Assembly: GCF_006345805.1 (NCBI RefSeq) | Contig: NW_021826833.1 | Span: forward strand, 1 to 11,929 | Source: Octopus sinensis | Lineage: Eukaryota | Reading direction: 5' to 3' | Length of the DNA stretch: 11,929 nucleotides | In this document: positions 5,306-8,237 of the stretch, in pieces | How the letters are laid out: each line of letters begins with the position of its first letter | How positions within the stretch are numbered: the first letter of the stretch is position 1 | Position numbers and translations under genes: made by a program | Notes under the pieces: model-generated | What the model saw: only the letters and a program-made list of their open reading frames with translations | Database searches by the model: none | What the model was told of the DNA's origin: nothing

Positions 5306-5380
5306 AATAATAATAATAATAATAATAATAATAATAATAATAATAATAATAATAATAATAATAACAACAATAATAATAAT
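5306..5380. repeat. (AAT)n microsatellite
   Basis: Directly visible. Confidence 0.97.
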
Positions 5381-5822
5381 AAACAGATCAGGTGTTAGAG
5401 CATAAGAAACCGGACCTCGTGGTGGTGGACAAGGTACACTACATGTGCTATATAGTTGATGTTGCATGCCTCTTGGATCTACGAAAAGTCAAGAGAGAAG
5501 GCTAAAATCAAAGCTATATACAATCCTGTTAAATACGAAATAACCCGGCTATGGAAAATGAAGAAGGTGAAGATAGTGTCAATTATCTTTTGGTCCTTGG
5601 GGACAGTATAAGAAGGCACAAAGGGGAATATAAAGGAAACTGGAATAGAGTGCCTAGTAGAACTGTTACAAAAGGTTCGCCTCCTTGGTACACTACATGG
5701 TTAGAATCATCAGTAAAAGTATTAGATAGCTGAAAAGAACAGGTAGCATGGTACCGTAGGCTGCAGGCAGAAAGCCCGTTATGCATGCATGACTCTAAGA
5801 GTTCCAATAAAACATGAGTTAA
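5381..5822 (+). mobile_element. RLE-type (R4/Dong-like) non-LTR retrotransposon 3' fragment, copy A
   Basis: TDQVLEHKKPDLVVVDK..CYIVDVAC (PD-(D/E)xK-type nuclease core), then in another frame KYEITRLWKMKKVKIV..SLGTV..VELLQKVRLLGT. A 3' UTR runs into (AAC)n(AAT)n. Confidence 0.85.
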
Positions 5823-5947
5823 AAATAACAATAACAACAACAACAACAACAACAACAACAACAACAACAACAACAACAACAACAACAATAATAATAATAA
5901 TAATAATAATAATAATAATAATAATAATAATAATAATAATAATAATA
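5823..5947. repeat. (AAC)n then (AAT)n microsatellite
   Basis: Directly visible. Confidence 0.97.
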
Positions 5948-6160
5948 ACTGGAACGACTCATGTACTGAGAAGAGCATTATCGCTGTGAAAGCATCATCC
6001 ATTCATGAATCCATTTATCTATTTTACCAAATACATATTTTACCTGTGAATTTGCCTGTGTAATCTGGGAATGCGTACAATGAGCTTCTCTGCTCTAGGT
6101 GTACGGAAACACTCAGCGAGAAATTGAAGAAAATTTGAAGAAAGAAGGGGAAAAAAACAA
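5948..6160 (+). mobile_element. Extreme 3' end of an RLE-type LINE, copy B (last 13 codons plus 3' UTR)
   Basis: TGTTHVLRRALSL* matches the RLE-LINE C-terminus type (LLGTAxxLRxxL*). The 3' UTR aligns by eye to copy D (6990-7210). (AAT)n lies on both sides. Confidence 0.75.
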
Positions 6161-6178
6161 AATAATAATAATAATAAT

Positions 6179-6576
6179 CACCAGACCCGAAGATTGGCCA
6201 TACTAGTGAAGCAAAAAGATCAGTTGTGATCATAGAGGACAAAATAAACCAACAGTGTAAGATTATAGATTTTTGCAATTCCCTGGTAGGTGAGTCGATA
6301 CCAAAGAGATTGAAAAAAATGTCAAAATATCAGAATCTAGCCAGAAAGATGAGGAGACAACAATTGTTCCTGTGGTAATTGTTTCACTTGGCACAACACT
6401 CAAAATGCTACTTAAGAGACCGAAAGAGATTGGAATTGAAAGTTGCAATTTCGACTTGGAAAAAAGTATCATCCTATGTTCTGCAACAATCCTAAAAAAA
6501 GATGCTTGAGATTAGAGGAAACTTGTCACTAAACATCAAGATAAAATAGTTGCTAACGAAATTAGCAAGTACTAGC
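6179..6576 (+). mobile_element. RLE-type (R4/Dong-like) LINE 3' fragment, copy C (heavily frameshifted)
   Basis: Pieces VVIIEDKINQQCKIIDF / VDTKEIEK / SKYQNLARK / TIVPVVIVSLGTT..KEIGIE..DLEKSIILCSATILKK. Bounded by (AAT)n at 6161-6178 and 6577-6589. Confidence 0.8.
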
Positions 6577-6603
6577 ATAATAATAATAAGAAGAAAGAAA
6601 TAT

Positions 6604-6856
6604 ATAAATGCAGTCTTTTAAAGCCTAGCCAGGCTCATGGGCCCGGTTTCCCGGTTTCTATGACGTATGTGTTCATCAGCTGGACGGAACGCCAGTCCAT
6701 CGAAGCGTAACTCATTTTTGCTAGCTGGGTGGACTGGAGCAACGTGAAATGAAGTGTTTTGCTCAAGAATACAACTCGTCGCCCGGTCCAGGAATCGAAA
6801 CCACAATCTTACGATCATGATGCTGACACCCTAATCACTAAGCCACGTGCCTCCAC
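6604..6856 (-). mobile_element. tRNA-derived SINE with a CORE-like segment
   Basis: Minus strand: A-box TGGCTTAGTGATT (6845-6833), B-box GTTTCGATTCC (6801-6791), then TTCTTGAGCAAAACACTT. The first ~145 bp align to the SINE at 10416-10560. Confidence 0.88.
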
Positions 6857-6989
6857 AATAATAATAATAATAATAATAATAATAATAATAATAATAATAA
6901 TAATAATAATAATAATAATAATGATAATAATAATAATAATAATACTAATAATAATAATAATAATAATAATAATAATAATAATAATAATA
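6857..6989. repeat. (AAT)n microsatellite
   Basis: Directly visible. Confidence 0.97.
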
Positions 6990-7210
6990 ATTGTCTTAAC
7001 TGGTACATCACACTATTGAGAAGAGCATTGTCGATGTGAGAACTGTTGCTGCTCATGTATTTTTAATTTAACTTTAAAAAAAAAAAAAAAATGAACGAAC
7101 TACTGAGTTTGGTTTAATGGCCTACCAATGTATACTATGAGTTTCTTTGCCCTAGGAGTCGGGAGACACTCGGCAAGAAATGGAAGCAAATTTGAAAGAA
7201 GAAAAAAAAA
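6990..7210 (+). mobile_element. Extreme 3' end of an RLE-type LINE, copy D (same subfamily as copy B)
   Basis: IVLTGTSH then, after a frameshift, LRRALSM*. The UTR segment TACTATGAGTTTCTTTGCCCTAGGAGTCGGGAGACACTCGGCAAGAAATGGAAGCAAATTTGAA aligns to copy B TACAATGAGCTTCTCTGCTCTAGGTGTACGGAAACACTCAGCGAGAAATTGAAGAAAATTTGAA. Confidence 0.78.
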
Positions 7211-7395
7211 ATAAACTAATAAAATAATAATAATAATATAATAATAATAATAATAATAATAATAAGAAATAATAATAATAATAATAATAATATAAGAAGA
7301 GAAGAAGAAGAAGAAGAAAAAGAAGAAGAAGAAGAAGAAAAGAAACGAAGAAGAGAAGAAGAAGAAGAAGAAGAAGAAGAAGAAGAAAAGAAAAA
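7211..7395. repeat. (AAT)n followed by (AAG)n microsatellite
   Basis: Directly visible. Confidence 0.95.
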
Positions 7396-7983
7396 TATTC
7401 TTTCTGGACAATATTATCATAGCCACTACCCACTAGTCCAGAAGGAATATAATAAACGCCACGACAATATAGCCAGGCTTGTCCATTGGACATTCTGCAA
7501 CAAGTATGGACTTGACAGAGCAAAATAGAAATGCAAAGATCGTATGAAATTTCATGATTCAGTGCGACCAGGAAATAGAAAATAGGAAGCCTGATATAGT
7601 CTTAGTAGAGAAAGAAAACAAACTATACTAGACCATAGATATAGCATGTCCAGCTGACAACAAGGTATGATATAAGGAAGAAAGAAAAGTCAAGAGATAT
7701 GACAGGTTAGCTTGGGAAGTTAAGCAGTTGTGGTCGATGAAAAAGGTAGCAGTAGTGCCAATGACTGTCGGGGCCCTGGGAACAGTGAGCAAATGTCTCG
7801 ACAAGTAAGTGCAACAAATAGGGGCTGCAATAAGGGTGGAGCAGTTGCAGAAAACAGCACTGCTTGGAACCGCTCGAACACTCCGGAAGGTGCTCGAAAA
7901 ATAAGATGTGTTACCTTAGTTCACTGGTTGTGAACAGCTGACACTGTAGTACATCTCCAGCGTTAGAAACTGTGCAAAGGCAA
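7396..7983 (+). mobile_element. RLE-type (R4/Dong-like) LINE 3' fragment, copy E (zinc-knuckle remnant plus complete RLE domain)
   Basis: EYNKRHDNIARLVHW..CNKYG (from 7445). One frame from 7587 to 7904 gives KPDIVLVEKENK..IDIACPAD..E..K..RYDRLAWEVKQLW..VVPMTVGALGTV..EQLQKTALLGTARTLRKVLEK* with three internal stops. The 3' UTR ends in (AAT)n at 7984-7996. Confidence 0.9.
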
Positions 7984-8237
7984 CAATAATAATAATGTTC
8001 CCTTTAATCTATTTTAAATTGGCTCTCAAATATTTTTCTTGTTTTTCTTTGTTATATTCTTAGAGCCAATCAGTGGACGCTATTGTATTTTAAAATAGAT
8101 TTTTTTTTTTTCTTTTGCATGTAATTTTAAGAAAATTTTGTTTCATTTTCATAATCGTCCAAATTTCGGAAATGAGAAACACAGAGTAAGGATTTTTGAA
8201 GAATCAGCGACCAATAAATGATTATACCAATTACTCT

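Follow-up and report, generated by a model that had tools for sequence, protein, structure and literature searches.

What brings the 3' ends of several retrotransposons, all pointing the same way, into one simple repeat? The question is raised by an 11,929-nucleotide stretch of Octopus sinensis DNA (assembly GCF_006345805.1, contig NW_021826833.1, positions 1 to 11,929 of the forward strand; this whole stretch is called the window below), in which five blocks resembling the 3' ends of long interspersed nuclear elements (LINEs) with a restriction-like endonuclease (RLE) lie in an A-rich trinucleotide microsatellite. We designated these blocks copies A to E. It is highly probable that a single long (AAT)n microsatellite received repeated, independent insertions of (TAA)n-specific LINEs resembling Dong, belonging to at least four diverged lineages. 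This reading follows from the five separate open reading frame (ORF) termini and 3' untranslated regions (UTRs), the sense orientation of the copies, their variable 5' truncation at A-rich arrays and the same architecture in relatives, which are presented in turn below. Coordinates are collected in Table 1.

An earlier note on this DNA, made from the letters alone, had placed five plus-strand, 5'-truncated copies at 5306–7996, and translation together with the ORF ends bore this out. Each block was found to hold one ORF terminus, located at 5733 (A), 5989 (B), 6509 (C), 7039 (D) and 7904 (E), and the blocks therefore represent five insertions rather than parts of fewer elements. The terminal peptides, each followed by a stop, are VKVLDS in A (5713–5733), LRRALSL in B (5966–5989), ILKKDA in C (6489–6509), LRRALSM in D (7016–7039) and LRKVLEK in E (7881–7904). 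Copies B and D retain the last 13–16 codons only. The translations of A, C and E share the pattern R/K-K-P-D-[IL]-V ... I-[IV]-D-[IVF] ... K-[ER]-x-x-K-x-x-[KR]-Y ... V-V-P ... G-[AS]-L-G, which continues as L-Q-K-x-x-L-L-G-T ... L-R-K-V-L-stop; its beginning reads KKPDLVVVDK in A (5404–5433) and RKPDIVLVEK in E (7584–7613), and in C the PD motif is now SV. The 3' UTR measures about 93 nt in A and 78 nt in E, where it contains the family motif CCAGC..CTGTG, and that of C contains a 7-bp hairpin, TTGCTAA/TTAGCAA. All five copies are dead, carrying stops, frameshifts and 5' truncations.

Table 1. Features of the window: compound array, copies A to E, then other elements. TRF, Tandem Repeats Finder; SINE, short interspersed nuclear element; RT, reverse transcriptase.
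Feature	Position	Strand	Remarks
Compound A-rich trinucleotide microsatellite	~2226–7996	+	mostly AAT; blocks of GAT/ATG, AAG, AAC
Left part of compound array	2226–2540	+	(AAT/GAT)76, then (AAG)n, then (AAC)20; TRF
(AAT)25.7 array	5306–5382	+	5' flank of copy A, also 3' flank of Penelope-like element; TRF
(AAC)20.7 then (AAT)20.7	5827–5948	+	between copies A and B; TRF
(AAT)6	6161–6178	+	between copies B and C; TRF
(AAT)45 array	6857–6991	+	5' flank of copy D; TRF
(TAA)25 then (AAG)34	7217–7392	+	between copies D and E; TRF
(AAT)4	7983–7996	+	right edge of compound microsatellite; unique sequence beyond
Copy A	5383–5826	+	5'-truncated RLE-LINE 3' end; RLE remnant KKPD...IVDV...KRExEK with stops, frameshifts
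Copy B	5949–6160	+	extreme 3' end: last ~13 codons (..TGTTHVLRRALSL-stop), 3' UTR 171 nt; same family as D
Copy C	6179–~6577	+	5'-truncated RLE-LINE 3' end; most decayed of the copies
Copy D	6990–7216	+	extreme 3' end: ..LLRRALSM-stop, 3' UTR 177 nt
Copy E	7393–7982	+	best-preserved copy; CCHC knuckle end (QKEYNKRHDNIARLVHW), then RLE (RKPD..IDIA..KEERK..RY), then ORF end 7904
Candidate sixth copy F	2541–2607	+	65-nt unique piece between (AAC)n and (AAT)21
Copy G	32–474	-	post-RT region fragment of same RLE-LINE family; 3' end beyond window start
Penelope-like element	2707–5305	+	5'-truncated; GIY-YIG PF01541, E = 6.7e-5; between (AAT)21(ATG)12 and (AAT)25
CR1/L2-type LINE 3' fragment	3367–3936		nested in Penelope-like element; (TAAC)6 tail
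SINE, tRNA-like head	~6601–6856, left end approximate	-	antisense in AAT array; outside LINE series

The domain identity of the remnants was examined by profile comparison. Pfam, which has no model for the RLE domain, returned chance matches only for the three coding remnants (A, C and E). A search with copy E yielded 79 homologues, some carrying a weak zf-RVT match, and their alignment revealed a CxxC..HxxxxC knuckle (C-x2-C..H-x4-C) followed by RKPD, IIDxA and KExEKxxKY. The profile of this alignment matched the CCHC knuckle and RLE of solved R2 proteins (9nl3, 9dou; E = 1.8e-7 to 3e-7), the match covering residues 989–1135 of the R2 structure at E = 1.8e-7. The PD, D and E..K residues are retained in copies A and E, and the PD is lost in C. 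Since copies A to E lack the RT, this domain was tested on a full-length relative, L013, which encodes a single ORF of 1401 amino acids with RVT_1 (Pfam E = 4e-22) and zf-RVT, and in which Pfam found no apurinic/apyrimidinic endonuclease (APE) domain. In the PDB, R2 structures were the best matches of its RT, at E = 1.5e-26, with L1 ORF2 at 1e-10. The knuckle and RLE match and the L013 RT bear out the RLE-LINE identity proposed earlier and, judged from sequence, blocks A to E are 3' ends of RLE-bearing LINEs. When the copies were searched at the nucleotide level against 82 fetched loci, E was 75% identical to copies in L001, and A, B, C, D and F found no relatives. The E-family relative in L001 (7282–8560) has an internal deletion that joins the pre-RT region directly to the CCHC/RLE region; it ends in ..CAACAAT, and from 8560 the apparent N-terminal region of another copy follows with no AAT array between them.

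We then considered whether the series might have arisen from one or two insertions that were duplicated locally, in tandem or as a segment, instead of by repeated insertion. In favour of duplication, B and D are related (67–77% nucleotide identity), and the next copy downstream of each, C after B and E after D, bears an RLE. Duplication of a B+C unit to give D+E would nevertheless leave C and E as alike as B and D, and these two gave no blastn alignment and are only about 24% identical in the RLE region of the protein (A is 36% identical to E). Among A, C and E no blastn match extended beyond words of 10–16 nt; these copies differ in truncation point and ORF end, their 3' UTRs are unrelated, and the arrays between the copies are unlike in length and composition according to TRF. 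A tandem duplication was therefore rejected, as the copies and flanks do not share comparable identity: only B and D align, and their neighbours C and E do not. We regard duplication, which the earlier note had named as one outcome that would overturn its proposal, as extremely improbable in the face of this nucleotide comparison. The same data make 'about four lineages' a fair description and confirm that the 3' UTRs of A, C and E, described as unrelated-looking, are so. Taken together, these differences indicate that A to E are independent insertions from several diverged lineages.

The orientation of the arrays was analysed with TRF. In the window, AAT-type arrays were recorded at 2226–2456, 2608–2670, 5306–5382, 5887–5948, 6161–6178, 6857–6991 and 7217–7292, and within 2226–7996 all of them read AAT, ATA or TAA on the plus strand and none ATT, in agreement with the earlier note. 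All five copies thus lie in the sense orientation of the array (p = 0.03 taken alone). Copy G provides an internal control. This minus-strand fragment is 5'-truncated at a point adjoining an array at 471–504 whose plus strand reads TTA/TTG, so that the strand of the element is the A-rich one; where the element is flipped, its adjacent array is flipped too.

The findings in the window were extended by examining 80 loci of related elements, taken from metagenome contigs and turned so that the ORF lay on the plus strand. Downstream tracts, defined as (AAT)n of at least four units, were counted in those 62 of the 80 loci whose sequence continued for 140 nt or more beyond the ORF, and upstream tracts were counted from five units. 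We found a sense (AAT)n downstream in 29 loci, (ATT)n in 3 and neither in 30, the tracts starting 60–150 nt after the stop (within 30–260 nt); the 29 to 3 ratio gave a one-sided binomial p of about 1e-6. Upstream tracts were AAT in 23 relatives and ATT in 1. Among the truncated relatives, whose end points varied widely, homology started 0–32 nt after an (AAT)n tract, and such a tract adjoined the truncated 5' ends of L040, L044, L045, L048, L054, L073, L075, L077, L080 and L081; in near-full-length relatives it lay 121–197 nt ahead of the ORF start. Furthermore, serial co-oriented copies with short AAT tracts between them were found in L002 (three copies), L003, L027 and L037. The extra copies in serial relatives were in the same orientation in five cases and in the opposite one in a single case, and one of them, like B and D, retained only the extreme 3' end. 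Collectively, these data demonstrated that the orientation rule holds genome-independently and inside the window.

To which clade might such elements belong? The RLE LINE clades named in PMC4640811 include CRE, R2, R4, NeSL and HERO. Dong elements of Bombyx, Anopheles and the snail Biomphalaria are listed as specific for (TAA)n in PMC3812793, and the targeting of (TAA)n is known from insects, molluscs and cnidarians (PMC3812793, PMC7998251), so that the sequence specificity attributed to Dong in the earlier note is backed by the literature, molluscs included. R4/Dong elements are reported to have no N-terminal zinc fingers and to possess a highly diverged Myb/SANT-like N-terminal module (PMC7998251). 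Dong-R4 ranks with the most abundant LINE classes of octopus genomes and with those most recently active (PMC13282606, PMC8967140), and the O. bimaculoides repeat library contains full-length Dong (PMC9115989). The mixture of repeats found in the window is similar to that picture.

The full-length relatives showed a comparable architecture. In three of them (P0080, P0081 and P0082) the first 400 residues contain 0 or 1 Cys, with no N-terminal Cys clusters or zinc-finger motifs, as in R4/Dong. A conserved W/Y-rich module of about 75 amino acids, KWTxEDN..LMxLYYQSNP..GYRKRL..W..RLADQARSI, is present at the N-terminus of full-length relatives and is duplicated in L013; AlphaFold predicts that it forms a confident small helical bundle (pLDDT 90.7). 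No significant Myb match of this module was found in Pfam, in a PDB profile search or in Foldseek, in which the best match of the model was the Sap1 DNA-binding domain (E = 1.8), with Reb1 at E = 5.5, both non-significant. Like Dong of Bombyx mori, DongAg and DongBg, the elements here are RLE-bearing, single-ORF LINEs inserted in (TAA)n with the A-rich strand in sense. Unlike the description of Dong, the window copies are decayed C-terminal and 3' UTR fragments, and some junctions are (AAC)n or (AAG)n. The elements behave like Dong, and they very probably are Dong/R4.

The same behaviour with some or all lineages in HERO or another RLE clade, and not in R4/Dong, would be an alternative. Some HERO families are described as microsatellite-specific in PMC4640811, as are NeSL-related Togen families, whose target is (TG)n; both groups are RLE LINEs like those studied here, and Hero stands beside Dong-R4 in octopus annotation (PMC13282606). 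The targets reported for them in that source differ, for example (TG)n for Togen, whereas (TAA)n is the documented target of Dong, molluscs included. The relatives also lack N-terminal zinc fingers, as reported for R4/Dong (PMC7998251), and have a conserved helical W/Y-rich N-terminal module that may correspond to the Myb/SANT-like module of that clade; among RLE classes in octopus, Dong-R4 is much the commoner. Membership in HERO or a further clade is therefore unlikely. Of the microsatellite-targeting insertion sink envisaged in the earlier note, the repeated co-oriented hits of several RLE-LINE lineages stand, and membership in R4 is probable only.

A mechanism for insertion can be proposed by analogy with R2. 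R2 resembles these elements in having a homologous CCHC knuckle and PD-(D/E)XK endonuclease after the RT (structures 9nl3, 9dou and 8gh6). R2 copies, like those here, are 5'-truncated and in fixed orientation, and R2 uses target-primed reverse transcription from a strand-specific nick. The element protein would recognize the (TAA)n duplex and its C-terminal PD-(D/E)XK endonuclease would nick the (TTA)n strand specifically; the 3' OH thus released would then prime reverse transcription of the element RNA from the 3' UTR and a (UAA)n end, and reverse transcription would usually abort early, giving 5'-truncated copies. The same polarity of every copy relative to the array would be due to the proposed strand specificity of the nick. 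R2 differs in that it uses one 28S gene site, which insertion destroys as a target, whereas the microsatellite target here survives; it also has N-terminal zinc fingers and a Myb domain, and the relatives here lack such zinc fingers. Because the target is a repeat, an insertion would leave two array halves that are both still targets, so that later copies would land beside, not inside, earlier ones, in a growing head-to-tail series. As this would predict, copies A to E do not interrupt one another, whereas non-specific elements in the window nest freely, as seen for the CR1/L2-type fragment in the Penelope-like element and the SINE after C.

Several points weigh against repeated insertion into (AAT)n by Dong-like elements. 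Some junctions are not literally AAT. The 3' side of A opens with (AAC)20 before (AAT)21, and E stands directly behind (AAG)34, with (TAA)25 before that, and has only four AAT units on its 3' side; copy C is split from the (AAT)45 array by the minus-strand SINE (~6601–6856). The earlier statement that each copy has an AAT-containing tract on both sides thus holds overall, with qualifications for A, E and C. Among the relatives, 30 of 62 have no (AAT)n of at least four units after the ORF, and some of these have (AATGAT)n, (AAC)n, (AT)n or nothing, indicating that (AAT)n specificity is not uniform across the family. Moreover, the 3' (AAT)n tract could in part be element-borne rather than pre-existing target, the account of nicking, of the choice of strand and of priming is borrowed from R2, and the clade call has target and architecture as its grounds.

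A further possibility is that the elements have no target specificity and bring along (TAA)n 3' tails in the manner of the Drosophila I factor, having piled up by chance in an AT-rich graveyard of transposable elements. Formally, each 'upstream' array of the window might belong to the copy before it as its tail, and many relatives have just 4–8 AAT units on the 3' side and then unique sequence, which is compatible with either the use of short targets or element-borne tails; the 30 relatives lacking a clear tract add to this. Association with 3' simple repeats is indeed known among APE-type LINEs, namely Waldo with (ACAY)n, Mino with (AC)n, Kibi with (TC)n and Koshi with (TTC)n, and the (TAA)n-tailed I factor has such a repeat and is not target-specific (PMC3812793). 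APE-type LINEs use the APE endonuclease, whereas the elements here carry an RLE and L013 has no APE domain. In addition, the variable 5' truncation points of relatives directly adjoin (AAT)n (L040, L044 and others), five consecutive landings in short AAT tracts with none in the body of another copy imply targeting even where the upstream tracts are earlier copies' tails, and Dong is classed as (TAA)n-specific (PMC3812793, PMC7998251). A chance accumulation of self-tailed elements is thus very unlikely, and repeated targeting of the microsatellite is preferred.

Further observations concern the junctions and 3' UTRs. Long (AAC)n or (AAG)n blocks occur at element junctions after A (5827–5888), before F (2482–2540) and before E (7294–7392), and relative L049 has (AAC)n 3' of its 3' UTR, as found after copy A; such blocks may be either AAT arrays altered by mutation or tails particular to a lineage. 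Relatives share the motif CCAGC-loop-GCTG[AT]G, which lies about 25–35 nt ahead of the junction and shows a few compensatory changes; it is present in E. The 4-bp stem CAGC/GCTG was 94% paired with 3 compensatory cells and an RNAalifold energy of about 0; a conserved hairpin structure was rejected because the stem is too short, leaving a conserved motif only. A strict pattern search for the hairpin in the window gave one unrelated match only. Four relatives (L060, L065, L069 and L070) form a separate clade with the conserved 3' UTR motif GGTCAGAGGCCGG.CCTGAG and are followed by (TTA)n/(ATT)n and not (AAT)n, apparently using the same microsatellite on the opposite strand.

Other elements were identified in and beside the array. 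Candidate F contains a 6-bp hairpin, CAGAGC/GCTCTG, followed by GAGCAGTAA directly before AAT, and resembles the family terminal motif; with low to moderate confidence, F may be what is left of a sixth 3' end of this type after extreme truncation. For Penelope-like elements the published microsatellite insertion bias is towards (TA)n and (CA)n, not AAT (PMC8557442). Part of the SINE (6709–6857) is 80% identical to 10413–10561 on the other strand, and its own-strand tail reads ..TTTCTTTCTTCTTATTATTATTAT; the AAT3/AAG units after C could therefore be either the flank of C or the SINE tail. A SINE at 10413–10750 splits a (TATG)n array in 10317–10945, with 24 units before and 46 after, and a SINE-like unit at 9098–9254 is followed by (ACAT)19 (within 9098–9332), suggesting that these are other microsatellite-associated retroposons in the window. 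A unit of about 215 bp resembling a miniature inverted-repeat transposable element (9333–9548) has the terminal inverted repeats ACGAGGGATGATGAAAAGTTCCTG / CAGGAACTTTTCAGCACCCCTCGT and lies between (ACAT)n and (TA)n arrays. Rfam and ARAGORN gave no matches in the window.

The biology described here is already known for Dong/R4, and conceptually the locus adds nothing new to it. It illustrates in textbook fashion how the target of a retrotransposon specific for a repeat can outlast insertion: several diverged lineages are lined up head to tail in a single microsatellite, and neither they nor any gene are harmed. Series of copies in the same orientation are also seen among relatives of many origins. 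In practice, such stacks break up long AAT arrays and complicate both assembly and the design of microsatellite markers; their annotation should read LINE/Dong-type, not unknown repeat.

A more speculative idea is that Dong-like LINEs also propagate (AAT)n and do not only use it, which we consider doubtful at present. With each insertion a new (AAT)n tail would arrive, either as a copy of the (UAA)n terminus of the RNA or through slippage during priming. A short seed site would thereby become a longer new target that receives further copies, and elements and AAT arrays would expand together. Nothing relevant to genome-wide AAT abundance in octopus was found in the literature. If true, propagation would explain a sizeable share of the AAT microsatellites of the genome, and this is the part of wider interest.

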